Of a stretch of 64,000 nucleotides of DNA, positions 1 to 16,900 are shown piece after piece. Position 1 is the first letter of the stretch. Each line of letters starts with the position of its first letter. Below the pieces are notes generated by a model. It did no database searches and was not told the origin of the DNA. It worked only from the letters and a program-made list of their open reading frames with translations. The DNA lies in contig DF237358.1 of the NCBI GenBank assembly GCA_000708835.1, forward strand, positions 1-64,000, read 5' to 3'. Source of the stretch: Klebsormidium nitens. Its lineage: Eukaryota > Plantae > Klebsormidiophyceae. Made by a program: the position numbers and the translations under genes.

Positions 1-1264
1 TGTGAGTGGCTCAAATTTAACACCGAACTTCATTTGGCTTGCTGATCACAGGTTGGCCAGAACAGGTTGCTGTACAACCAACTTCGGACGGTCGTCCGAA
101 CAAAACTTCCGGGCCGGCGGCGGTGGTCCGAAGCGCGGATTCCAAATTTGGCTCCGGACTTTCGAACTATCAAAATCGAAGAATTCGCGCAAAATCTTCG
201 ATTTCGATACGGTTCGATAGTGGAGTCAACTGAACGCGCGCGCCTGAAACGCGCACAAAGGTTCGGCGACAGCTTTTAGGACCGTCATGGCAATGTCGGT
301 CACGCTGAAGACCGACGGCCACGATTGGTCCATTGGCCCGACATTATCCATCGGACGGACGCGCTATGGACCCAGCTACAGTGCAGGCTGCTTGTGGAAA
401 TCGAACTGCCGCTGCCTAATTCGTGGCAACCGTAGCTAGACTTAGAGGATTAGACTCCACTGGCAAATGAGGGATTCGGGAATGAAAATTTTGGTTTTCG
501 GAGCTTTAAGAATTGTCACTTGACTCCTTAATTGAACCAGACTACAAAATAAACGAGATCTATTGCACGGTTTGCCCGTCATTAACCACTACGTCAGATT
601 AGCAAGTAGGTTGCTTTTATAGATATCATTTACAGCATACTGGCACAGCTTGTTTTGTTGCTTTTGTGTGTTGTGCCCTCAACCGTTTTTGATTCGCAGC
701 CGACTCAACAATTCAATACAATCATTGTGCGTGCAAATCAAATTACAATTGCAAAGCTTCAGAGGCTTCAATGGATGAGTTGGGAATTAAATACTGTTGG
801 CACTGAGTGGTAAAGCAATCTACAATTATTGTTGGCATGACCCGGGAGCTACATTCAAGCTCATGCTGTTACCGTCTCTACTCCAATCTTTGGGATTGAA
901 TAGCTCATATTATAAAGTGCACTAGTGATACAATTCACAGGTGCATGTCGGACAAACGCGCATGCTCCAACAAATGTCCAATGGCTGCACCGACCAAACA
1001 TATAGACTCATGCAAAGGTAGACTCCCAACTAAATTCGGTTAAAGTAAACCGGCATTAAATTAACCATGACAACATGTCCGACCACAGAACCCTAACTGC
1101 CTTACCCTCCTCAAGCAAAAAACGTACTGGTCAATCCGCAAGACCTGACCCCAGCTAGGCTGTTTGCACATTTGCAGAACCTCTATGGTGGCGAGCGAAG
1201 CTGAGGCTAGGCGGAGTTAAGAGGCTTGCTGCTACTGTAGAGGTATCTGTTGGTAGAGGTTCAG

Positions 1265-4200
1265 ATGTCGTCCTCACCTTTTCCCACATGGGGGGGGGAT
1301 GGAGCAAGAGCTGTGAGGAAGCGCAAGCGCCTGTCGCTGATTGCGCAGCAAGCTGCAGAGGCTACTTTCGTGGCAACTGTGGTGGTAGCGGCGGAAGACG
1401 CCGCAAAGCAGGGGGCAGCGGCAAGAGAGAGGGATGCCGCAGCGCGCGCGTCTAGGGCAGCCACTCAAGCTCGGGTTGGGGGACGATTCTCAAAGGCTTC
1501 CACAAGCCAATGCGGGGGTTCAGGGATGACGGTGCGGCCAGCGGAGCAGCAATTGCGTCTGGAGAACAGAAATGTGAAGGCGGAGTTAGCAAAGATGATC
1601 AAGGACAGAAATGCGGAAAAGCGGGAGGAACAAACACCGGCAGAAATAGAGAAAGAGAGAGACGAGCTTAGGGTCAAGCTGGCTCAAAAGGAAAAACAAC
1701 ACAGAATACTGCGGAGAAAGTTCCAGGCCCTCCAATTCGTACACCGCAAAACAGCAGCTGAACTGGCTGTAGGAAATCCCCCTCCCCCACGCCCCATCGG
1801 TGGGGATTCTGCCCCTACTCTGCTTAAGATGGCGGCTGAGCTGAACTCTTTCTTGGAGACAAGATTTGCAAGCCCAGCTGATATCCAAAAGGGCCTTCTT
1901 GAGCACTACTCCCGCAACCGGCACCTCTATTCCCTCATCCTCCAATCTGAGATTACCCAGAACCAATTCGACGAGGTCTGCGCGCGCAATCCAGCGTGGT
2001 GCCAGACTACACAACGGGATTTCGTCAAGGAGATCACTGCCCACTACACTCTAGCTCGGTGCCTCACATTCCAGATCATCTGCCGGGTGGGCCATCAGGA
2101 AAAGTACCAGGACGCAATCAACCTGTTGGCTAAGGTCTTCAACACAAAAACCAAGAAGTGGGACCGGGTTGAGATTGGATACAAGGGGGGGCCTAAGGAG
2201 AGTAGGCTCCACATACCTCTCCTCAAGAGCAAAAACGAAGTTAGCAAGTTCCGGAAGGAGATCCACGCAAAAAACCCGGTGCTGCAAGACGAAGACGGGA
2301 CGGCGGCGTGGCTGCAGGACCTCCCGGCCATCCTTGAGGAGGACATTGTCAACGAGCGCACCCGCGGGTACCTGGAGAGCAGGAAGGGGTTGAGCGAGGA
2401 CGAGCTGCGGGTGCACTTTGGGGGCGATGCGGCGAGCTACTTCAGGGCTGTGAGCACCAGCAAGTTTGCGGTTAAACTGATTGTAGACGGGCAGCAGGTT
2501 AACCATAACCCAAGGAGCATGCGGAGCCTTCTCCAGTTCGAGGGGAAAGACAGTTACGAGACGTGCAAGCGGTACTACAGCCCTTTCATTCCGGTGATAG
2601 ACCAGCTTCAAAAGGAGGGCATCGAGGTGGACAACACCCACTACAAACTTATCCTCACACTCGGGGGCGACTACGTCTGGCTTGCGGAGATTCATGGCCA
2701 CTCCGGCCACTCGCACACCAGCGGCTGCCTATTCTGTTACTGCCCCAAGTCCAACTATGGGGCAGTCGTGGTCAAGAACGGGCGGCGCGTTCCAGAGGGA
2801 ACACGGCGCAGAACCACAGAAGAGATGCACGCAGGCGCTCACAGGCCCCTTAAAACAGGGCCAAACGAAAAATGCCCCCACTGGCCCCAGCGCTTCCCTG
2901 ACCAGGCGACCGTAGACGCACTCCCCGGACCCCAAAACAAAAACCAACATAAAGATTACGCCACCACTCACCACGGAATGAGGTTTGGAACACTGGCCCC
3001 CCTCCTGCCCATTGGCATCCTCGCCGTCTACCTCTGCATCCTCCACACACTACTGCGTTTGGCAGCCACCACATTCCAGCGCACAATCGAGTCCAACCTG
3101 AACACGCAGGAGAAAGTGGACATCATCAACGACTTCATCAAGAAACTGAACCTGGGGTGCAAGAAAGTTGTAATCCGAAAGAGAGACGGGAACTCGAAGA
3201 AAGACACGGAGGCAATCAACTTCATTGGGCGGTGAGTGACAACAAAACCTAAGCTCCTTTTTTGATACTTCGACTTTGTACCATCATGCCTCAACGTTCC
3301 AGCTCAAGCTCAAGCACAGCTGCAGCTCCAATTGGAGCAGAACTGATCATCACATGAGCCCCAATTCAGTAGCTCGCCCAACTGCTCAGCACTCGCACAA
3401 GGAATTCCCAAAATTAACCCAACCGTCAACCTACAAAAGCTATCTTCAACCCAAAATCACCCCCTGATCAGCGGAGTCATCAGATGTAGCTGGGGTTATT
3501 TAAGGGCAGCTCAGGCTTTTCCAGCACCTAAGGATTCGTGCGCCGCGCTCACCTGCCGCATCTGCTCGTCTTGCTGGCCTTCTTGCTTTGTCTTCTGAAG
3601 CTGCGGGCCCATGTGGCCAATCTCCAGGTCGCGCAATTGTCCCTTCTCATTCCCAGATCGTGTGCTCTTATTACACTTCAGATCCCAATAACAGATTGTC
3701 TCCCGAAGCTTTCTCCTTCAATCTTCTGAAGTTGCGGGCCCTTCTTGCCTCTGTCTTGTGCACACAGAATGCCTCTGAGATCTCACTGCTTGGAAGGCCG
3801 CAAAAAGGCAGCAATCTGAATCCTAGAACTCGTGATTGGAAGAATAGAGCACATAGCAAGAGCAGAACAGCAGTTGACAAGAGGAGCATTGACAAGACTG
3901 AGCACTGAAGCAAAGAAAACCTTGAAAGAAACATGTATCTTACAAGCAGGAAAGTATGTTTCTTTCTCTACTGGAGGGCAAAAGCAAGCTCAACAGATCA
4001 GATCACTGCTTGTGACTCATGACTGGAGCTCAAATCCTCTTTTCTTCCTTGTCTTGTGTAGGGAGGCGCTCGTGATCCTGGACGAGAGGGTGTACACAAG
4101 AATCTGTGAGTCGGTCATCGACGAGCCTGACAAGCGAGCAACCTGCATCTTGGTGTGGGCCTCGCTTGCGGCGTTCAACCGGGAGCTCCGTGCTCCTATG

Positions 4201-4677
4201 CTAAACCCCAAGGATGTGGCCCAGCGCACAGCAAAATCTATTCTGGTGCAGAACCTAGCAGTCGGATTCGTTGACGCCTACACAATGGCAGGGTTTGGGG
4301 ACATGTGCACCCTCTATATGCACCTCAGCATGGAGCACATCCCTGAGCAGATTCGAGGGCTGCCGTTAGATCTGAGCGTGGTATCCCAGCAGGGGCTTGA
4401 GCACCTTTTGAAGATGGGAAAAACGGATGCTCACCTGTTCTTCAACAAGCGGAAGCGGGGGGATGGGCAGGAGTCAGGGAGAAACCAGCAGGTTCTGCAC
4501 AAGGAGCAGGAGCGGAAGAGGATGAAGGCGGAGATTGCCCTGCCGAAAGGAAGAACGGAAAGGAGGATGGATGCGGACCAGGATATCCTTGCCCGAAATA
4601 AGGTGGATCGAGCAGAAGCCAGGGGAGTCTTGAGCAGGACGGACGAGATGATAAGAAAGCGGGTGGAAAAGGCATAG
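1265..4677 (+). CDS. RAG1-core/Transib-like DDE transposase, ~860 aa; exons 1265-3231 and 4062-4677
   Basis: GT-AG intron 3232-4061 (gtgagt...ttgtgtag) joins the two ORFs in frame as INFIGR-EALVILDER. Motifs: VHFGGDA (D388, nt 2426), LGGDYVWL (D469, nt 2669), GCLFC (C488/C491), CILHTLLR, TLYMHLSMEHIPEQI (H743/H748), SQQGLEH (E769, nt 4399). N-terminal RKRKR NLS-like motif and a coiled coil. Confidence 0.85.
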
Positions 4678-5403
4678 CCAGCCCTCCAGCTCCTTCTGCA
4701 AGCGCACAATGCGACGCGGGCCTTTCACAGCAGCGATATGGAGGTTGAGCCTGAGGTTGTGGAACCCACCTTTGTTGCCGGCGCGCTGCAAGGCAGCAGC
4801 CTTTGGGATCCCCCTGGGTTGAGTGCGGCTTCAAGCATTGCTGCAGGGAGTGGCTTGCCTGATCGTGGCTTCGCTTCCGCGAGCAGAAACGCTCAAAACG
4901 TGCCAGGTTTCGGGGGGGAGCCTCCGTCGGCTGCGAGGGGTGCAGGGGGGAGTACGGGCAGCGGTGGTGGGAGTCTGCGTAACGGAGGTTTGGGCGGGGC
5001 AGGGATTCCAACTCCGAAGGCTGGCGGAGTTGGGAGCGGGGGGGCGGGCTTGGCGGAAGGGTTGATAGATGTCTCGGCAGGGGAGGTGGAAGGGATGGGG
5101 GCGGAGGTTGGTCGGGGTGGGGGCCAAACTGGCCAGCGAGGCCACGTTGGCCAATTGGATGGGCGAGCAGGGAATGGGGCAGGCGCGCCAGACGCGCTCC
5201 TCCCAGGAACATCGGAAGTTGGTTTGGAAGCTGGCAGGGCACCGGGGACAGGGCCGTTTGCCGCTGGCCCTACACCCTCCTCCAATGGTACAAGGGCAGG
5301 GAGGGGGAGAGGCAGAGGCAGGGGGGCAGTTGGCAGGGGTGGTGGAAGCAGAGTCACGCGGGCTGGGAGGAGGATCCCTGCGTCTGCAAGGATGCAAAGT
5401 TGA
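4678..5403 (+). CDS. Gly/RGG-rich in-frame continuation of the transposase beyond a single TAG (possible original C-terminal tail)
   Basis: The frame stays open from 4678 to TGA 5401-5403 in the transposase frame and contains RAGRGRGRGRGAVGRGGG. AATAAA at 5433-5438 follows the TGA. Confidence 0.45.
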   Translation, partial: PALQLLLQAHNATRAFHSSDMEVEPEVVEPTFVAGALQGSSLWDPPGLSAASSIAAGSGLPDRGFASASRNAQNVPGFGGEPPSAARGAGGSTGSGGGSLRNGGLGGAGIPTPKAGGVGSGGAGLAEGLIDVSAGEVEGMGAEVGRGGGQTGQRGHVGQLDGRAGNGAGAPDALLPGTSEVGLEAGRAPGTGPFAAGPTPSSNGTRAGRGRGRGRGAVGRGGGSRVTRAGRRIPASARMQS

Positions 5404-5807
5404 TTGTTGCTTCACTGTAGATGTTTGCGTTCAATAAATTGAAAGCCTTGCTGTTCTCAAAAACAAAACTTATAGGAAAAAACATTGACAATGTAAAGCT
5501 ACAGTGTTGTTAGCTGACCAGTTCACACTTGGCTTCCTTCGATACCGTCATATGGATATCTGCATAGATCTTGCATGATCAGCATCAAAAATGTGTTATG
5601 CATACCCTGCACACGAGCCTATGCTTCAAGGATTGTCACTCCTCTGCAATGTGTACAGTGCCCAGCGGTTCCAATGTTGTGCCCACCAAATGCGGCTGAT
5701 GGCGAGTAAGCATCTGGTTCAAAGGATTTTGATTCTGGCTCTGATGTAGAAGTTTTAAAAAGGCTGCCAAATGTAAGAAGCTCAAGCAGAAAGCACGCAA
5801 GCTTTTG

Positions 5808-7016
5808 TCACCCAATGTGGGCTCGAAAAGTTAACTTGGTTATCAGCCCTGGCCAGCAGCCTCGTGAACAAAGACCAGAAGGACAGCTTTTGATCAGCCA
5901 ATTGAGCTGGAAATCACCTTCTCCAGAGGCGCCATCTTCAATTTGCTGCAGCTCTCTCCCAGACCGCAGCTTGAACGCCTCGTAAGGATTGGACGCTAGA
6001 TGTATCCGCCAGGGAGACAGCTCCTGGAGCTCATCGAATTGACCCCTCCGAGGCGCAGCAGGAACAGGAGGCGCGACAGGAACATGGAGTGCTCTCGGCT
6101 CTGGGTGCAAAACGTGCGCGCGCCTTGACTCCCTCTCAGCGCGGGCTTCTTCAAACGCCTCTTCTGACGAGTACTTCCCTCGCAGCACCTGCTCTGACCT
6201 CTCAACCATGCCCAAATTGATAGGCATGTCCGGCATCCTTGCAGAAATCAAAGCCGCCAGGTCTCGAACTCTCGCCTCCACATGAGGCCAGCCTTCTGCA
6301 GGCTCGGGCATCCCCTCTGCCTTGTTAATCTCTCCGTGCTTGTTAAGCTTGACCCAGCCCTAAGTTATGGTCACATAGGGACCTTTGACAGCACTTTCGG
6401 AGTGGGTGGCTACAATGGGAGGAACCACAACCAGGAGCTCGCTGCCAATTCCTTTTTCTGGTTTGCAGAGTTTGGCGGCTTGATACCCCTTATCAGGATG
6501 GATGCCTCCGAACCCACAGAATCTCTCCACTGCCCACGTTGTCTCTAGGTACATAATGTTTGTCTCTCTAGCCGCCGTCGAGTAGGACTCCCCCTTCCGT
6601 TCCTTCCGAAACACTTGGTGCCAGATCCAGAAGTCGACAGGCGATTCAGACCTGTACTCAACCTCAGAATGGTAGGGAGATTCTACCCTATTCCAAAGTC
6701 TCCTGCGCCAGTTATCCCAGAAGGTTTTGCTGTCTACCACAACCTGAGATTGCTCTTCTGGCATCCTGACCACCCTCCTCTCCACAAACCCCTTTCCGCA
6801 TGTTGGGCACCGCATCGCTTCCCCATCAAGGGCCAGTCCGTGGTATGGACAGGACTGAATCTCTTTTGATGAGACTTGGTTTCGCGGCACCTGTTCTTTC
6901 TGCCTTTTCCTATTGTCCCTTTCAGCCTGGGTCAACAGTCTCTTAGGCTTTGGTGGATCTGCAAATCTTGGGCCCCCAATATTTTTCCTCTTTCCGGGCC
7001 GCTCTCCTCCCGCCAT
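5808..7016 (-). CDS. Transposon partner gene of unknown function, N-terminal CPYH-x10-CPTC Zn-finger-like motif; interrupted by one in-frame TAG (6362-6360)
   Basis: ATG at 7016 follows a pyrimidine-rich leader. ORFs 6360-7277 and 5808-6311 share a frame and are separated only by the TAG. An optional further Pro-rich exon (5386-4893) is reachable through a donor near 5915. Confidence 0.55.
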
Positions 7017-7273
7017 TGCCAAGAGAAAGAGGCGACGAGACGTAAAACCACCAAAAACACCTATTTGAGAGAGAGCTGCTCTCAAACTCCAGCACCTCCT
7101 TTTCACTTCTGAACAAACCCTGCGGTGAAAAGCTTCAGAAGACCCTTGCGGAGCACATGACCAACTTTCAGGAAAGGAAAAAAAATCTATGCCAAGATGC
7201 CACCGCAGAAACTGATTGGTGGTCTTGCATGGCTGCTCCTGACCATGCACCACAGATGACACGACTGGACAAG

Positions 7274-7636
7274 TCAAATTGCCTCAAGTTGCATCTTCCC
7301 GCTCAAATACGCGTCAGCAAGCCTGATCCTTCGCTCCTGTTCAAAGCTCCCCTCTTTCGCTTTCGAAATGGTCAACTGCGTCAGCAAAAACTGCTGTTTG
7401 AATAGCTCCTGCAACTTGCTCTCTGAAGCAGCTTTCACTGCTGTTCGGAGGTGTCCGCAGGGTGTCCGAAAGTTGGATCTTCCTTTTTCGAACACTGAAA
7501 ATTGATGTAAGAATTCCAAGCCAAACCGACGGCTCAGGATCATTCTTATCGCAGATCTGGAAGGCGGTCCTCGATCTGACGGTCGCGATTGATCTGGCCG
7601 TGATGGCTGTAAGTTGGTTGTGTTGCGTGCAAGCAC
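7274..7636 (-). CDS. Short ORF upstream of the partner gene (possible extra exon or third element gene)
   Basis: 120-aa ORF with a helical, charged second half (AVKAASESKLQELFKQQ...EQERRIRLADAY); an acceptor-like ttttcag lies inside it. No recognisable domain. Confidence 0.25.
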   Translation of the reverse strand: MLARNTTNLQPSRPDQSRPSDRGPPSRSAIRMILSRRFGLEFLHQFSVFEKGRSNFRTPCGHLRTAVKAASESKLQELFKQQFLLTQLTISKAKEGSFEQERRIRLADAYLSGKMQLEAI

Positions 7637-8140
7637 CAGTAGCTCGCCGACAGCTAGCCGAGCTCAATGATCATTAATGGTCCTCAATGATTGTGACGAA
7701 GGATGGTGCTCGGGCAAACCACAAACCAAAATCCTAAACCATTAAATGAAATACCTACGCGCTCCGCACTCGTCCGCACTACCCAGTACCGACCCTAACC
7801 CCCCCACTCAACCCTGTCCGTCTCCCGGGCACTCTCATTCGTCAACCCCAGTCAACACGATATCGAGAAATGGGCGTTCCCTCAAAAACTCAAAGTGGGC
7901 ATAGACGGAACAAGTTAGTCAAGTAACCATCAATTGGCATCGTGCGATACATTCAGCTCACGAGTGCTTGTCTGCCGTCCGTTCTGAAATGCACCCGCGA
8001 GTGCATACGCCCACCTTGACAGCGAGAAAGAGAGCACACCCCCTCAGCTGGGCCCGAGCGGTGATTGTGTGATCTGTTGTAGCGTCGAAGCAGCTCTAAC
8101 CTGTCTTCGTTCGTTGCAAGAGATCATTTGCCAAGCAGCC

Positions 8141-10015
8141 ATGGCGAATCCAGGCGCCTTGCAGCTGGCGGACTGCGTGAGTTGGTCGCAAAAGTATCCC
8201 AACTCTACCAGCGTGTGTTTGAACAAGTTTCACGAGTTCACTGCGTTCTCGCTGGGCTACATCTGCTCCCTTGCAGCAGTTCCTTTCGGGAGGGGAAGCA
8301 GGGGTGCCGCATTTACTAACAGGCAGAAAATTGCCCAGGCGTCATGGCTCATGATAGTGATCGCGCTTTTCTTGGGGTTGATGAGGCGGCGGGCGTTTCG
8401 ATACACGCAGAAGTCCACGGCGCAGATTCTCTGGGAGCCTCTGGCATTCTTCGCAAAGCTGCTCGCCATTGCATTCGCACCTCTCTTTGGCATCCTTGTG
8501 GGGGACATTGACCCGAACAGCAACCTGCTGGAAGTGTTGGTTTGGATTCTACCGGGCCTCTTGTTCCACCGCTACAGTCCTGAGATTATCGAGGACAACT
8601 CCCTAACGGGGATGCTCATCAACACAGTCACCTATGTTCCAGGACTGCTTACAGCAGCATTCAGTCTTTGGTCGGCGGGTGACTTCTCACTCCTGGCCCC
8701 TGAGGAGGTGTGGACAACCAGACACTACTTGCACGATCATAGCGCCAGCCTGGCGATCCGTGTTCTGGCTTCCATGACGATTGCTGTGGCGTTCCTTAGG
8801 CAGACTTTTGGTGCTTACACCAACCTTGTCTTGGCCACTAAGCGGCAGCAGCTAGATTATGACCTGGGTCGAGTGAATAAGAACAGGCGCCTCAGGAAAG
8901 ATAGGAGGAAGCGGCAGGAAGAACGCGACAGAATAATGCAGACCCTTTACAACACGAACGGGCTTCCCCGTCTCAGTGTAGACTTGGATTGGCATTCCTT
9001 CAAGAACCATGTGGTTCTAGCTACTGTAGAGGCCTTGACGTTTATACCCATCGGCGTGTTTGTTATCTGGACAACAACCTTTGTGAGAGGAGTCAGCTCT
9101 TGCTCGCTGAAGGACTCGCAGGCAGCCCCTCCTAGCTTCTTCACATGCCAAGCACTAGCATGTAACACACGGGACTTCAGCTGTGACCGCATTGCACAGG
9201 ATACTCCCACTCTGCTGGAGAAGGAGTTTTGCGACTCGCCATCTTTCAATGTAGCCATCTTCACGGGGTATCTGACTGTCGCATTCACAGCGGCATCCTT
9301 CCTGTGGCTCTTTGTCCAAGCTTGGGCAGTCTATCAGAATCACACTGACGAGAGCCGGCCTGCTTGCAACAAGAGGCTGCCAGAGGAAGTCAGGGGAGAG
9401 TTTGTCAACCAGGTTCAGCATCTTCTGGGGACGTTCCACTCCAGGAGAAGCATGGGGGCTCACTTCTTCGTGCCGTTCCTTATATTGAGTATCTGGTGGC
9501 CCCCGAGGTAAGAGCTTTGTCCACTCAATATCAGAAGAGCATAGGCATATGCCTTGACCACTCTGGTTTGTCTGGCGCTTACTGTTTGACGGCCGTATCT
9601 GGTTGCCACATGCAGATTGCCATGGTGTTTGAGCCTCTTTATCAACTAAGTCGCCGTCTTGCTAATCAGGCGGCTTTATAGGATTCACATTCTAGGTTTA
9701 TGTTGTAGTTGAAGGCCATTCATTTATTCATTCATCCTCATTGGGTTTCTGGTAGATGATCAGAAGGAATAAAGCCTCCAGCCTCGGAGTCCTCTTTCAT
9801 GTCTCCTGGTTTTAGTGATGCAGACAAAGCGGCCTCTTTCTCACCCGTTGTGCTTCAATTTGTCCAGGTCGCTGAGAACAGGCGCGAACCACGTTGCAGA
9901 TTTGGAAAATCCAGATACTTCGGATGCCACGGACGCGGATTCTGAGGTTGAACACTCTGACGGAGAGGATCTGGTAGAAGTCGAGATGCAGGAAACGAAC
10001 ACGAGTGGAAAGTAG
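8141..10015 (+). CDS. Uncharacterised multi-pass membrane protein; exons 8141-9507 and 9868-10015
   Basis: gccATGG start context, several hydrophobic segments, a basic cytosolic stretch and a Cys-rich loop. Phase-2 intron gtaag...tgtccag joins to an acidic C-terminal tail. Confidence 0.7.
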
Positions 10016-10965
10016 GAGCAAGGGGGCCTAAGTAGTGGGTGATATAGTGATAGACCTAGGGGACTTTAGTGCTACAAACCTACTTTTCTACGGTGTCGGA
10101 TAATGTTTTAGTAGGTGTTTGGCAATGTGGAACGAGTAGTTCATGCATGATTGTAACATGCCATGCATTGCGTGGGGTTATATTTATGGGCGGCCAGTTA
10201 GCGAGCCCATACTTTCACTTCGTACTAAGCTTCGTCATAATCGTAGTATAGTTAGTATTGCTAGCTGGCAGATTGACGTGACGTGTTTATGGAAGTTGGT
10301 ACACGTACACTAGTGTCTGAGTCCATGCACTGCCACCTGGGATGCAATCATTCAGACCGACCAGATGCCACATGTAATGATCATGAAGGACATCCAACTA
10401 GGGCGGACAAATGTCAGTCGACCCAAGTGACGTACTCTACGACGACTCAGCAGGCCCTAGCGTCCAATCGAAGGCTTCATCGCTCCGATCTTCAACGAGT
10501 TATTTTATTGCTCGATCAGTGCGCTCCACATTATAAGATGCTCAAAAAGTTGTTAAAGAATCCGTTCTTGCACGTTCCTTGGTGAGGGCCATGCACGCTT
10601 TTTCCAATCATTCAGATCACCATACATGCGATTGTGCAGAATACTCCTCCTGTGCGCGGACCATAATGAGATAGGTGGAAGTGTCGACCTGGCAGGTGTA
10701 TGCGCTCAATCATAACATAGCCTGCCAACGTTAAGTTTCATCCGGACTTGCCGTCACATAGTTCCCTAGCTGGATCCCCGGCAAGAGCTTAGGCCAGAAT
10801 TCACTCGAATAGGATCTCTGAGAACTATATTTGACGTGTATTACACAATCATTTGTACAGAGCCGCCCAGCTCAGATGCGGAAGCAGGCTACGTACATAT
10901 CTTGGACGAGTCTTGCTTTCAGGGCACAGCTTTCGGCATCTGAATAAATGCTGATTGAAAAACCC

Positions 10966-13900
10966 TTACAAACGTGATCTCAGCGGCTTGCTTGGTTCGA
11001 CTCCATCATCTTTCTCCTTGACCTTGCTTGGGAAAAGCGCGGGATCCTTTTCGACGTCTGAACTAAGTGCGCCCTTCACCCGCACGCTTGGATCCAATCG
11101 GATCAGCCCTTCTTGAGCGGTGGACACAACCAGCTCCCCACTCCGGGTGTACATTCTACCCAAGCAGAAACCACGGGAGCCAGAGGAGCGTGGGCTCTCC
11201 ACCTAAGTGGAGGACGGAAACGGAAATGATCAGAAAATCGACAGACAATTTGGCGTGGATGACGTTTTTGGCATGAGGATTGCTGGCCCCGATTCGGCAC
11301 CACTTTGATCGTCTGACCCCCTCCAATGATTCAATTTGCCAGCGTTCTCCTAGCAGGCCTGGGCCTGTTCACCCCCGATTCAAACGTACTTGCAAGCGCC
11401 ATCTATTCAAAAGACCCCCACGCAGTCCCGAGGTTGGGCCCCCCTACCCGGACCAACTCCGACAAGCAGCTACACGTCGTTCATAAGCTAGAGCAGTTCT
11501 TCAAAAGGCCCCACAAAACAAAACCTCAGGTTTCGTGTCAACAGAAATAGGTGAAGACAGCCAGCGATTCGCAGGTTGGCTTTCACTGAATACGTTGCGA
11601 GGAATGTCCCAATCTGGTATACACCAGGCTCAAAAGAACTTTACCAGCGTTCAATCACCACGATCAGCAATCGTGGTTTCCAATCTACGCGGCCCTCACC
11701 TGGTATACCGTATAAGAGCCAATCGTCAGCCCGAAACCTTCCCGTCAGAGATCCGAATCTGGTGGTAGCCCGAAGTCAGATCAAGACTGGTAAAGTATTT
11801 AGCCCCTACGAATCCAGAGGAATTAAGGTCGTTTCTTGGGTTGGCAAACTACTCATCTACGGGGCCCTCACCTGGTATAAGAGCCAATCGTCGGCCCGGA
11901 ACGGTCGGTGGAACCACATGCTGTGGTCGAGGCTGGCGACCACCAGGCGGCGGTCGGGGATGAGGAAGCCATGCGGCAGAAGTGCCGTCTCCAGGAACGA
12001 GAAGTCGGAGGCGTAGGCCGCGGTCGCTTGATGGAGTGCCGGGTCACTGCCCAGATTGCCTCGGGCGCGCCACCAGATGAGCTGCCTGCACAAGATAAGG
12101 CGGGTCGTAAGTTATTCCCCGGTTTCCGGTCCACCCCGCTCTTGGGTGGGTAGGTCGGTCGGGAAAAAATAATAGTTGGTTTCACGGTAGTATGTTCATA
12201 GAGTGGGGTGATTTTGGGGCAATGTCCATAGTTTTGGCCCGAACTCTGCCTATTTCAAAAGATTGTAAGCCGATTCGACTAATCTGGGGCCGAAAGCGGA
12301 CAAAATAAATAAATCTATTTCAAAATCCTTCGGGTTTTGGGACCGGAAACCAGGATCTGACTTTGAATGCCTAAAAGGCGTCTATTCTTCGGCGTAGTCC
12401 CTCACGCAGTGGCTTTTGGCGTGATTCGGGAGAGGGAAAAAGGACTGAGCTTTCTTTCCTTGCCCTGATGAGCACACTCTCCTCAATCGAGGGGTTTTAG
12501 AAGACTCGAGGTATGGTGACGGCCGCTGCAACGTGTGCAAGTGGATGGTTCTGATCGAACCCAGATTTGGCTTCTGCTTAACGTGTAAAAATATTGCGCC
12601 TAGCTTCGATGCTTCTGGGATTTTCCTTTGGCGGAAACTCCCTTCTTCGTGTTGACCAGACTATTCGACCCGTAAACAATTACTGGCTCCTCAGAGGAGC
12701 AATGTAAGCGTTGGTTCCAGCCCAAAGAGAGTTCAGTGCGTCTTCTTATAGCAACAAAAACAAATGCAGAAGGAATTAAGAGTTTCGCTGTACATTTTCA
12801 ATAGCCGGGTGCTAAGTGTTCGTCCGCTTCCTGTGCCCTCCTGTCTTCAAGCAAACCCCTTCGAAATCCAAACATTTTATCTTCCCTTTCCGTCTTACGT
12901 GCTGCAAGCTCCACTGCCTCTATTCCAACGTCGAGCCTTTGACCTACACATTTCTGACCCTTCAGTACGTTAAGAAACACCCAAAGATGAGAAGAAAGAC
13001 GAATCGGATTAGTAAACTCGCCTGGGCGGCCGAGCCTGGGGCTCCACTCTGTCAATGGCTTCGCAAAACTTCATGTCGATCGCAATGGGTCGCTTCCGCC
13101 GGCGCTTGAAGCGCTCGCGCGCTTCCCTGTTTCAGTCGCACCACAATCAGATGAACTGTGGAAACGGAAGTATTTCTAATCTTCAAGCTTGAAGCGAACA
13201 TAACACAGAAAGGCTCTGACGAATGGGACAGGAAAGTTTGCAGAAATTTTGAAGCTTTGATGCAATCGAGCATTGAGTGGCTCATAAAGCTGGGAAGCCG
13301 TTTCGTGCTGCTTACAGAAGCGTTCGAGAACAGGCAAATGCCGAAGGCGCTGGTTGGAAGATTAGTGCGTTGAGAGTATGCAAATCGATGCTAATCGGCG
13401 GCTCACTTAGAGACACGTGGATCGTTGTAGTACTCCTCCTGAAGCTCCTCCCACGTGGGAACCTGCAGACACGTGCCATTCAGTGAGTGAGAAACTTTTG
13501 CATGGCAGGCTCCAAATGAATGCGTCTGAATGCTTGAATACTGCACAAGCGTCTCCCACACCATCATGATGCACCGGAGAAAAGCGGTAAAGTCGTACAT
13601 TTGCGGAGAAGCAGCAGGCGACAACCTTGAAGGGCGCTCTCATAGCACGAAAGAAAACGAGCAACATCGGAACGAGCGATCAGACGAGCGAACCGGAACA
13701 GTCGAAGGCTAAGAGCGGCGACCGAGACTGGCCGTTTCAATGCTGGGGGCCGCCGGCATCGGGTACTGGTGCTCGAGCCCCTCTTCCGCTCTCTGCAGCC
13801 ACAGGGATCTTGACATGTTTGTGGTGTAAGCGGGTCTAAGAATATGGCCTATTAGGGTTTTAGGGTTTTACGGTTTTGGGGTTTTGGGGTTTTGGGGTTG

Positions 13901-16900
13901 GTCCTCAATACTCAGCAGCCGCGACGCAGCACTCAAAGTGCACATTTCAAGTCCAGGAATGATTTGCAACTGTTGCTATTGATGAACCGCAAGGGAGACT
14001 GGGCACCGTCAGTGCGCGCCAATAGGCCAGCCGGGCGGCAATCTCGCTCGCCCCTTGGCGCCACAATACAGACCGCCCAGCCCTCTCTCTCCACCTTCTT
14101 GCCGGCAGGTTTTGGTGATGGCCGCACATGTTTTCGTCTACGTTGTCTTACAACAACTCGTCGACCCATGCTTTCAGCGTCCCCAGGGGTGTCTACACTT
14201 TCCATACCGTCCCCTCAACTTTCTGAAGCCGTTTAAGCAGCGCGACTTGCATGCACCATCTTGAGATTAGATTGCGCATCGACCAAAAGCCAACTTGGCC
14301 TCCAGTGTTGCCTTTGTAATACCGACAGGTAGAAGGTACGGTACTTTTTCGAGCCATGTTACTCCTCTGGTATGTACCTTGGATTACCACGTGGATCTGA
14401 AAAGCCATCCGATTGCATGGCGGAGAAATCTGGAAAGCTTTTCGCAGCTTTTCGGTCGACGTGCATCCTTCGAGTCGGTTTTGCAGCTCTGAATTTGCTG
14501 ACCTGGAATGACGCATGGAGGCTGAAGATGTTGCGGCCCTTTTGGATTGCAACCACGTGGCGGGTGGCAAAGGACTTGCCGTCCCGGATATGATCCACTC
14601 GGTAGATGATGGGGACTGCGGAAAGAGCGCCAGATAAGCGTCACAAACTCGTCGAAGCGGGCTTTTTTGCCAACTGTAAGCAATTGAGAATGTATGAAAG
14701 CCAATCCTGGCCTCCACTCATAGGTTGATTTAAAAAAGATTATTGCGTACTCATCTGTGGCTCATATGAATTTTGTAACCCCTGCTTCGCTCTACACTTT
14801 TTGAATAAGCAGAATAGGGCATGATTCGACTTGGAGCAGCAGGTGCACTGTTTCTGCTCATCGCAGGGATCGAGCCCCGTCCCATACGACCAACAATGAG
14901 CAAGTAAACACATCTAGTAATAAGTGCACCGAATCACGAAGATGCCAAGCTCGAAGATCAGCTGAGTGTTTGAGGTTCTGTAAAAGAGTCGATTCCCAAA
15001 CAGCTTTTGCCACGCGTTTTCAGAGTCGTATCAATATTTGACCCAACTTTGATTCCTTGAGCACTACCACCAACATCACCACCTCTAAGAGTTCACTAGA
15101 GTTCACTGGCCACGCAACTTCGTACGCTCGTTGATTCCTTTTGCCCGCTCAAAGCAATTGCCTGCCCCACTTCGACAGAGGAGCTTCTGAGTGCAGAGAT
15201 CTACGAGAAGATGGCACCTCTGACGGGAAAGCAAAGCGACCACTCACCGTTTGGGTCGCCGGGGAGGAGAAAGTAGGAGTGCAGGCTGTGTACACCCAGG
15301 GAAGCATCCACCGACTGGCAGGCCGCCCAGAGGCCCTGCCCAAGAAGCTGGCCGCCAAACAATCGGGGGTACAGGTTGCCCTCGGGAATCGTCACCCCCT
15401 GGAAGAAGTCCGCCTGGGCAAGAATCAAGGGAAATACGTTCAACCCCGTTGGTGGAGCAGGAAAACCCATTCTAGCTTTGGCAGATGGAACAGTCTGCTC
15501 ATCGAAGCGCTCAAGAATTCGGACATAATGATCTCAGAACCAGGTCGTCTGATACAGATAGTGTGCATATTGGACTTCTCTTAAAGTGTCATACCAGCCT
15601 AAATACTGGGAGTGCTCAAAATTGGAACCCTGTGGCAAAAGACTAGAAATCGAGTTGCTGTCAAAAAGCGGAAATCTTCAAAGTGGAGGAAACAAATGAA
15701 GAAGAACGACGCCTGTACAAAGAAGCGCAGTTAGCTGCCGGGATCGAGAGAGAAACGTGGAGGAGAGGTTATGTTCCTCACCTCAAGTCTGTCCAGGTGG
15801 AGGATGCGCGCTATGAGCGCTTGCTTCTCGCCCTCTGGTTGGACCACGTGGCTGCTGTCTTCGGACAACAGGTGACAGTGCTCATTGGGAAGTAACAAAA
15901 CGGTGACCTGCACAAGTGGTGAATAGACTGTCAGAGCAGCGCTCATTATTCATGTGACAATACAGGGGCTTTGCAAGATCGTCACAGAATGCTGCAATTC
16001 TGAAGGCCCATAAATGCGTGACGCATCCGTCTATAGAAGTTGATCTTTCAAAATACATGCCGTTGTCTTTTTCCAAATGGAAGCAGAGTACGGTGAACTT
16101 TCTCAAGAACAAGACCAAGCTGATCATCGAGAGTGCACTGGCTCCCGTCCAAAACGGGCTGAAAACACTATGGTCCGGCTGGCTACATGGCGGCCGCCTG
16201 ACAATCTGATCATGGCTTGATTGCTTGCTTGATTGCCAGCTTAAGTACACGTACGTTGGCTTACTGCTGTACAATATTCATGACACGTACTGCAGGGGGA
16301 AAGACACAAACAAGCGTGACATCATCGAGCATACCTCCGTGACCGCAACGACGTCGGCTGAATGGAGATGCTGTTTGGAGAAGTCGGTGGCGCAACTGCC
16401 TTGGCCTCCAAAATGGTCCCCAACCGAGAGGACCAGTGCGGTGTGGTCTGTGCTGCCAACGTGGTTTGGGGCCTGGACAACTCGAACCTGCAAGTGTCCA
16501 TGTAGAGTTAGTCTAAACCAGTTGTGCTTCACACGTTGTGATGGTGGAAATTTGTCAAAATGGAACATAACTAAAGTCGGTTGACAGTGCATTCCTCTAC
16601 AAATTTGCCGAAGTTGACCGGTTCAGAAGTAGCCATACAAAGTAGAGGCGCTTAGCTTTCAGCAACGTCATTGTTTAATGTCTCATTCCCTGGATTCCAA
16701 CTTGCATCTTGTCGAGTCGATGGACCAAACACAAAATCTGCTCCCATGTACTCATGAAGCGCCTACTTGCACCATGTGGGAGATTCGTAACACAATTCCT
16801 CGTTTTCAGACAAGTACACACAGCTAATGTGTCGCCAATTCAACTGCCGCCCACTTCTGGATAGTACACTTTGAAAATAAAGCAGGCTTTGCAGACTCTG

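Follow-up and report, generated by a model that had tools for sequence, protein, structure and literature searches.

The locus and its two genes

The DNA considered here, the window, is a stretch of 64,000 nucleotides, positions 1 to 64,000 of the forward strand of contig DF237358.1 (assembly GCA_000708835.1) of Klebsormidium nitens, a streptophyte alga, as the initial annotation had supposed from the letters of the sequence. Near its left end a transposase gene and a second gene that converges on it are enclosed by short inverted repeats, giving an element with bounds at approximately 73-7622 and a span of 7.55 kb. The reading that we prefer, at a probability of roughly 80%, is that this is one copy of a family of 6.4-7.6-kb two-gene cut-and-paste DNA transposons of green algae that belongs to the CMCT clade. 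That clade of DDE transposons comprises EnSpm/CACTA, Mirage, Chapaev, Transib, Plavaka, ESTA as well as Lanisha, with RAG1 as a domesticated offshoot (Kojima 2025, PMC12730594). The traits established for the algal family are a RAG1-fold DDE transposase, short inverted repeats that end in CAC, 2-bp duplications and a conserved partner gene.

The transposase is encoded on the + strand. An open reading frame (ORF; 1250-3235) runs into a GTGAGT donor, and, after a predicted 830-bp sense-strand intron (3232-4061, GTGAGT...TAG), resumes in frame at 4062 and ends at a stop codon at 4675-4677. Exon 1 (1265-3231) provides residues 1-655 plus 2 nt and exon 2 (4062-4677) provides residues 656-860. The initial annotation had described a spliced ORF of about 860 residues; the product has exactly 860 residues and matches KFL_004090010, an annotated protein of K. 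nitens (P0001 in our collection), at 100% identity. The intron lies at the same position in the Klebsormidium-type copies L001 and L002, and in alignments the sequence across the exon junction (…NFIGR/EALV…) is contiguous in intron-less relatives.

The putative catalytic acids are D388 (codon 2426-2428) and D469 (2669-2671) in exon 1 and E769 (4399-4401) in exon 2; the putative zinc ligands are C488 (2726-2728) and C491 (2735-2737) in exon 1 and H743 (4321-4323) and H748 (4336-4338) in exon 2. The family carries an additional CxxC...H...H site (CPxC…H…H) in its insertion domain, which in the window protein is made up of C537, W540 (2882-2884; Cys in the consensus), H569 and H594, all encoded by exon 1. 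In an alignment of 26 long relatives D388, D469, C488, C491 and H594 are invariant, and the YxHxxxxH…QGLE block, with E769 in its QGLE part, is conserved. The zinc signature of the CMCT clade is present as C488-x2-C491 and H743-x4-H748, and its DDE triad on an RNase H-like fold is predicted, from alignment and model, to be D388, D469 and E769. The window protein has no Pfam family above threshold and no match to the RAG1 models PF12940, PF26100, PF26101 and PF26104, and a PHMMER search of it against PDB gave nothing usable.

Likeness of the transposase to RAG1

Remote homology emerges when the family is searched as a profile. A hidden Markov model (HMM) built from the 26 relatives finds, as its best matches in PDB, zebrafish and mouse RAG1 (E values of 7e-12 to 2e-8) and the amphioxus RAG1L protein BbRAG1L (5e-9); it does not reach HzTransib at E <= 3.5. 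The RAG1 match falls into two collinear segments, which between them take in the second D, both CxxC and HxxxxH, and E. In this match EGxDxY is paired with RAG1 DESDHET, GGD(469)...C488xxC491 with GYDEK...CTLC, YMHxxxxH(743/748)IPEQI with YLHKTLAHVPEIV, and SQQGLE(769) with SEGNE, so that D469, C488/C491, H743/H748 and E769 stand in register with RAG1 D708, C727/C730, H937/H942 and E962. (The RAG1 residue numbers D708 and E962 are figures taken over from the initial annotation, as is the RAG1 D-to-C spacing of 19, which is also the distance from D469 to C488 in the window protein.) Of the pairs of motifs that had been aligned with RAG1 by eye, this profile reproduces those of EGxDxY, GGD...CxxC, HxxxxH and QGLE. 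D388 lies outside the HMM alignment, and its assignment is supported by invariance in 26 of 26 relatives and by its position in the structural model.

An AlphaFold model of the window protein from its single sequence is poor (pLDDT 39); one of residues 176-800 made with 142 aligned relatives has a pLDDT of 92 and a pTM of 0.85. It contains an RNase H-like β1-β2-β3-α-β4 unit in which D388 falls on strand 1 and D469 where strand 4 ends, with E769 on a late helix, the last catalytic one. When this model is compared with PDB by Foldseek, the first 44 matches are all RAG1 chains, at E values of about 1e-11 to 1e-12, followed by BbRAGL (1.6e-9) and HzTransib (1.9e-6), and then by Hermes at only 1e-2. 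Superposition by VIA-align tells the same story: mouse RAG1 459-987 aligns over 449 residues with Z 23.5 and a root-mean-square deviation of 3.6, BbRAGL has Z 20.9 and HzTransib Z 20.4, and the next fold, that of P element transposase, has Z 12. Profile, Foldseek and superposition agree in this way on what the initial annotation had proposed, a DDE transposase with RAG1-type catalytic and zinc ligands. By the model, the transposase is built like the RAG1 core all the way from the dimerisation/DNA-binding domain through the C-terminal domain; this is likeness of fold, not family membership.

The distinction matters when the comparison is widened beyond PDB. In AFDB the best neighbors of the model are unnamed proteins at 6e-18 to 4e-15, which, from the prefixes of their accessions, we take to be cnidarian, rotifer, Rhizophagus and amphioxus proteins; RAG1 itself appears at 2.2e-12. 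By UniProt accession prefix, matches of the model in AFDB are presumably Rhizophagus and Stylophora proteins. The Caenorhabditis elegans PHD-finger protein Q9XWD9, presumably a DUF1280 protein, is ahead of or level with RAG1, at 3.4e-13. Atlas clusters from Streptophyta, Mucoromycota and Cnidaria match the model as well as RAG1 clusters do.

Ends and target duplications

Initial inverted-repeat searches did not find the element ends. Since the copies are too divergent for their flanks to be aligned, the ends were sought through shared terminal motifs. A 36-bp terminal/subterminal motif at 74-109 (+), which holds a small palindrome (TTCGGAC..GTCCGAA), is identical at 34 of 36 positions to L002 8707-8742 and lies ~1.2 kb upstream of the transposase gene in both copies; their coding regions, unlike this stretch, are only ~70% identical. 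In the window the left terminal inverted repeat (73-84, +) reads T-ACAACCAACTT and makes, through the first 11 bases of the 36-bp stretch, a perfect 11-bp inverted match to 7611-7621; the right one (7611-7622, +), which reads AAGTTGGTTGT-G, is placed just beyond the second gene. Copies L002, L003, L004, L006 and L010 end in the motif of this repeat.

Three other copies are complete. L010, on K. nitens scaffold DF237217, has a 17-bp inverted repeat at 5048 and 12255 and is flanked by duplicated TC; L006 has ends at 959 and 7384 flanked by CG; and L004 has ends at 4612 and 11002 flanked by TT. L002 and L003 contribute left ends only, and L011 a right end only, its scaffold stopping before the other. 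CACAACC is found at eight of nine observed ends, and the family rule that follows is 5'-CACAACC…GGTTGTG-3' for elements 6.4-7.6 kb long, whose inverted repeats measure 11-17 bp and which are flanked by a 2-bp duplication. The 5'-CA...TG-3' termini and duplications of 2-5 bp that characterize the CMCT clade are seen in L010, L006 and L004 (TC, CG and TT, respectively), with the window copy imperfect. Its left end reads TACAACC in place of the family's CACAACC, the terminal C being read as T, and its junction can be read either as a perfect 11-bp repeat with GT on both sides (GT/GT) or as a family-type end with a terminal C>T change and a TG/TT flank. Under the family rule, the window copy has an imperfect junction.

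A different rule, with ends at ACAACC and a GT duplication, was set aside: it fits the window alone, the preceding C is present at eight of nine ends, and L004 and L010 have perfect 2-bp duplications only if the ends are CACAACC. An inverted pair at 76-93/5207-5224 was also considered as the ends and rejected as chance; it is G-rich, coding-like sequence and is absent from other copies. Subterminal repeats of the AACTTCGGAC motif are not enriched.

The convergent partner gene

Downstream of the transposase gene, and tail-to-tail with it, all Klebsormidium-type copies carry a second gene. Its conserved part in the window (6102-7016, -) was located by tblastn with the partners of L001, L003, L004 and L006. 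The product, an orphan zinc-ribbon protein, has ~300 conserved residues; its N-terminus is basic, its zinc ribbon has the form C…CxxC, and LETTxAVExFCGF and VVPPIxVxH are conserved blocks in it. Pfam, Atlas and a profile search of PDB yielded no match to it, and none of these searches gave a Kelch, RAG2 or PHD signal. ORFs that are convergent with the transposase genes of distant marine relatives are homologous to the partner, with hhalign E values of 1.9e-6 (L008) and 0.017 (L012), and comparison of profile with profile for distant relatives gives 2.2e-5 over 170 collinear columns. (The similarity of the convergent ORF of L009 is not significant taken alone.) Because the partner is conserved beside such distant relatives, the gene pair is old within the family.

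The partner is a candidate accessory factor or subunit of the transposase. A bolder proposal, which we regard as unlikely, is that it is an obligate second transposase subunit and the functional counterpart of RAG2, in which case the two-subunit, tail-to-tail RAG-like machine would not be an animal invention but an old or recurrent arrangement in the clade that goes back to early green algae.

Three further arrangements were noted among the relatives. The convergent downstream neighbor in P0083, a distant member from ENA contigs, has a zf-CW (PF07496) histone-tail reader domain reminiscent of the RAG2 PHD finger; a histone-reader partner of this type would fit chromatin-guided targeting of the kind that the PHD finger of RAG2 provides. 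In L008 (6111-13879; marine metagenome ERZ25071359) two transposase genes of the family lie head-to-head and 368 bp apart, at 6952-9633 (-) and 10001-12847 (+), each with its own convergent partner ORF on the outside; this is either a mirror-image pair of elements or a rearrangement. L002 has a ~170-bp inverted duplication of 80% identity (7325-7478 and 14740-14893), the right arm of which overlaps the 5' coding part of the partner gene, and which points to a piece of another copy, in opposite orientation, lying upstream of the L002 element.

State of the window copy and its transcripts

The transposase ORF of the window is open over all 860 codons and its DDE and C2H2 ligands are intact. The initial annotation had called the catalytic and zinc sites intact, which holds for the DDE residues and for C488/C491/H743/H748 but not for the second zinc site: Cys540, a near-invariant residue, is Trp (TGG) in the window copy only, and the other Klebsormidium-type paralogs whose alignment reaches this position, 13 of 13, have Cys. 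In the partner gene a conserved block is interrupted by an in-frame TAG (6360-6362). An intron that would remove this stop codon was rejected: RNA contigs run across the TAG unspliced.

RNA contigs of four same-organism runs (X1-X4) show a spliced minus-strand transcript, antisense to the transposase, at 1200-7150. Leaving the partner gene, it extends over the full length of the transposase gene and has six CT..AC joints, at 1558/2217, 2369/2970, 3095/3551, 4076/4434, 4494/4770 and 5383/5918, which define antisense (-) introns at 1559-2216, 2370-2969, 3096-3550, 4077-4433, 4495-4769 and 5384-5917. None of the contigs has the sense splice 3232-4061, contigs being evidence of presence and not of absence. 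Either read-through or an antisense RNA related to silencing may account for this transcript. The two genes are separated by a spacer (4738-5403) that is G-rich on the + strand, has long Gly-rich (+) and Pro-rich (-) ORFs, holds the antisense exon 4770-5383 and is without homology to other copies.

The partner stop codon, the C540W substitution, the imperfect left end and duplication, and the fact that only antisense spliced RNA is seen together make it probable that the window copy is no longer autonomous; it would be mobilized in trans at best.

Relatives and hosts

An exhaustive phmmer search of 1.8 billion representatives found 135 relatives. Those with names are from K. nitens, Mesostigma viride, Tetraselmis striata, Cymbomonas tetramitiformis and Pterosperma, and most of the others are from metagenome or run assemblies. 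Word-index homology searches are swamped by the low-complexity N-terminus of the protein, and the catalytic part, residues 375-780, was used instead; it finds four K. nitens paralogs of 44-53% identity, one of which had already been found. Separate K. nitens scaffolds carry at least five paralogs between them. No match emerged from a metagenome scan with P0001. The family is multi-copy in both Streptophyta and Chlorophyta. It extends further, and the suggestion of the initial annotation that this is a green-plant lineage fails on a Nematostella protein that was picked up by profile search and falls inside the family.

A quick maximum-likelihood tree unites the Klebsormidium-type copies in one clade (SH-aLRT 100), within which the window copy is a separate branch. 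The clade is in the same subtree as sequences from Mesostigma, Pterosperma and Cymbomonas; the forks that join them are not resolved in this tree. Genes flanking the element differ between copies. To the left of the family copy L010, positions 1-4342 (K. nitens DF237217.1) hold a gene with a weak KDZ-transposase match (PF18758) and a gene with a D5_N primase domain; thus, other mobile or virus-like DNA is clustered there. A search of the literature on Transib or RAG1 in Klebsormidium or green algae found no description of the family.

Placement of the family

Assignment to the CMCT clade at large is what the evidence favors. The RAG1-type fold is probably common to the entire clade. Structures have been solved for RAG1 and HzTransib and for no other member, so that their position at the head of PDB lists does not discriminate between the clade and any one of its lineages.

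Several considerations weigh against the CMCT assignment or narrow what can be built on it. Placement inside the clade depends on remote homology and on a predicted fold, and no member passes any Pfam threshold. There is no solved structure for EnSpm, Chapaev or Mirage, and the notion of a clade-wide RAG1 fold comes from the literature and from predicted neighbors in AFDB and Atlas. The window copy's own junction is ambiguous between two readings of its ends and duplication. For the family as it is known from sequence, none of transposition, an excision footprint or an empty site has been observed, and the role suggested for the partner comes from its conservation only.

The alternative that survives best is that the family genuinely belongs to the Transib/RAG lineage, as a deep green-plant branch of it, and has Transib plus RAG1 as nearer kin than Chapaev, Lanisha or EnSpm. 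We regard this as unlikely. It has in its favor that RAG1 and BbRAG1L are the best PDB matches by profile as well as by fold, that N-terminal helices of the model can be superposed on part of RAG1 upstream of residue 459 (a region that we take to be the nonamer-binding domain), that the ends start with CACA, like the heptamers of recombination signal sequences (RSS) and of Transib, and that the tail-to-tail layout of two genes recalls ProtoRAG. On the other hand, rank in PDB is uninformative for the reason just given, the profile that finds RAG1 misses HzTransib, and AFDB neighbors, Q9XWD9 among them, score as well as RAG1 or better. Weak matches to DUF1280 outnumber those to RAG1 among the members (8/26 vs 1/26), the duplication is of 2 bp with no heptamer-spacer-nonamer arrangement at the ends, and the partner gives no Kelch, RAG2 or PHD signal. 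(Duplication length would not exclude Transib by itself, because a 2026 preprint reports elements of the Transib lineage with 3-bp or TA duplications.) Of the Transib/RAG assignment made in the initial annotation, the core architecture and the ligands stand; membership of the lineage is opposed by the duplication, the lack of RSS-like ends and the balance of weak Pfam matches.

A far less probable alternative to a transposon is a domesticated host gene pair, in which a transposase-derived recombinase and its cofactor serve the alga. The long open frame with its DDE and CCHH residues intact, the divergence of the paralogs (which are not near-identical) and the fact that the locus is transcribed would all suit such a pair, but the transcripts seen are antisense, in the window a stop codon interrupts the partner and a conserved Cys is missing from the transposase, paralogs are many per genome, flanking genes vary among copies, and in three other copies the gene pair is flanked by inverted-repeat ends with 2-bp duplications. 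Least credible of all is contamination (named in the initial annotation as grounds for abandoning its claim) or a recent horizontal transfer out of an animal or fungus: cnidarians supply the nearest relatives outside the algae, but the intron position is common to Klebsormidium-type copies, paralogs occupy at least five separate K. nitens scaffolds, the Klebsormidium clade lies in one subtree with other algal sequences (though the forks between them are not resolved), and same-species RNA runs hold the sequence at 99-100% identity.

If the CMCT transposon reading is correct, the biochemistry of RAG1 and HzTransib suggests how the element would move. A transposase dimer would pair the two CAC-ended repeats and nick beside CAC; hairpins formed on the flanking DNA would free the element, and its 3'-OH ends would then be joined to target strands 2 bp apart.

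The ancestry of RAG1 is usually framed around animal Transib and ProtoRAG elements. Here, a complete RAG1-type core and a conserved second gene, with defined ends and a 2-bp footprint, occur in both arms of the green algae, with Klebsormidium and Mesostigma in the one and Tetraselmis, Cymbomonas and Pterosperma in the other. This provides tractable non-animal material for asking what an accessory subunit does for a RAG1-fold transposase and how the spacing of target cuts (2 vs 5 bp) is set on one fold. In genome annotation, a set of K. nitens "hypothetical proteins" can be understood from it as transposon genes.

Comparison with known systems

The family lacks the tested defining features of classical Transib, of RAG1/RAG1L (by Pfam), of Chapaev and of EnSpm. 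With RAG1 and RAG1L it shares the core fold (Z 23.5 and 20.9, over ~445 residues), the second D, CxxC, HxxxxH and E in register, and ends that begin with CAC; the tail-to-tail second gene recalls the RAG1L-RAG2L layout of ProtoRAG. Sequence identity is ~12% and the Pfam RAG1 models are not reached (relatives P0046, P0150 and P0152 match them at E values of 8e-4 to 2e-3 over ~50 positions, at no more than 18.1 bits against a 25-bit threshold). The algal duplication is of 2 bp and not 5 bp, the ends are short and have no 12/23 heptamer-nonamer structure, the insertion domain has the extra CxxC...H...H site, and the partner is a ~300-residue zinc-ribbon orphan in place of a protein with Kelch or PHD signal.

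With Transib, represented by HzTransib, the family shares a core fold of RAG1 type (Z 20.4), CAC termini and the signature of DDE plus C2/H2; Foldseek matches HzTransib less strongly than RAG1 (1.9e-6 vs 2e-12). The 5-bp duplication of Transib is absent, the three complete algal copies having 2 bp. Absent also are its ~37-bp RSS-like ends with a CACAATG-type heptamer, spacer and nonamer; the algal repeats are of 11-17 bp and have only the first CACA in common with them. The algal family also differs in having two genes.

Likeness to Chapaev is confined to one segment. Weak matches to its Pfam model (PF06918, DUF1280) are found in 8 of the 26 members, all in the EGxDxY stretch between the first and second D; the best scores 20.8 bits against a threshold of 25, only 38 of 220 model positions match, and the matches fall only at profile positions 180-218. 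The Mirage model DUF1258 (PF06869) has one match in the 26 members, at E 0.078. Mirage elements in Repbase have a 2-bp duplication, and of these two features it is the length of the duplication that agrees with the algal family.

EnSpm/CACTA elements resemble the family in that they have the C(2)C/H(3-4)H signature and CAC ends, carry two genes each and make a short duplication. They differ from it in making a 3-bp duplication, against 2 bp, and in ends that read CACTA, against CACAACC; no subterminal repeat arrays were found in the algal element, and none of the 26 members matches Transposase_21 (PF02992) even below threshold, in keeping with the judgment of the initial annotation that this is unlike a CACTA transposase. 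The accompanying statement that CACTA elements are the known plant members of the CxxC/HxxxxH group no longer holds, a further plant lineage, Lanisha, having been named from a moss. Fungal ESTA elements, for their part, also match RAG1 in HHpred (PMC12730594).

Lanisha is a proposed superfamily, the plant lineage of the clade, named from the moss Ceratodon purpureus, whose element is GenBank MT647524, with Repbase families from Rhizophagus and Stylophora (Lanisha-1_RhIr and Lanisha-2_StPi). Kojima's tree places it between Transib/RAG1 and Chapaev (PMC12730594). Like the algal family, it is a CMCT-clade lineage in a streptophyte, and its hosts coincide with the groups from which the best structural neighbors of the transposase model come (the Streptophyta, Mucoromycota and Cnidaria clusters of Atlas and the presumed Rhizophagus and Stylophora proteins of AFDB). 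Compared in this way, by host groups only, Lanisha may be the named lineage most likely to contain the algal family. The find is not a new kind of enzyme, nor a categorically new RAG lineage of green plants: resemblance to RAG1 has been published for the CMCT clade as such (PMC12730594), and Lanisha may already cover the family.

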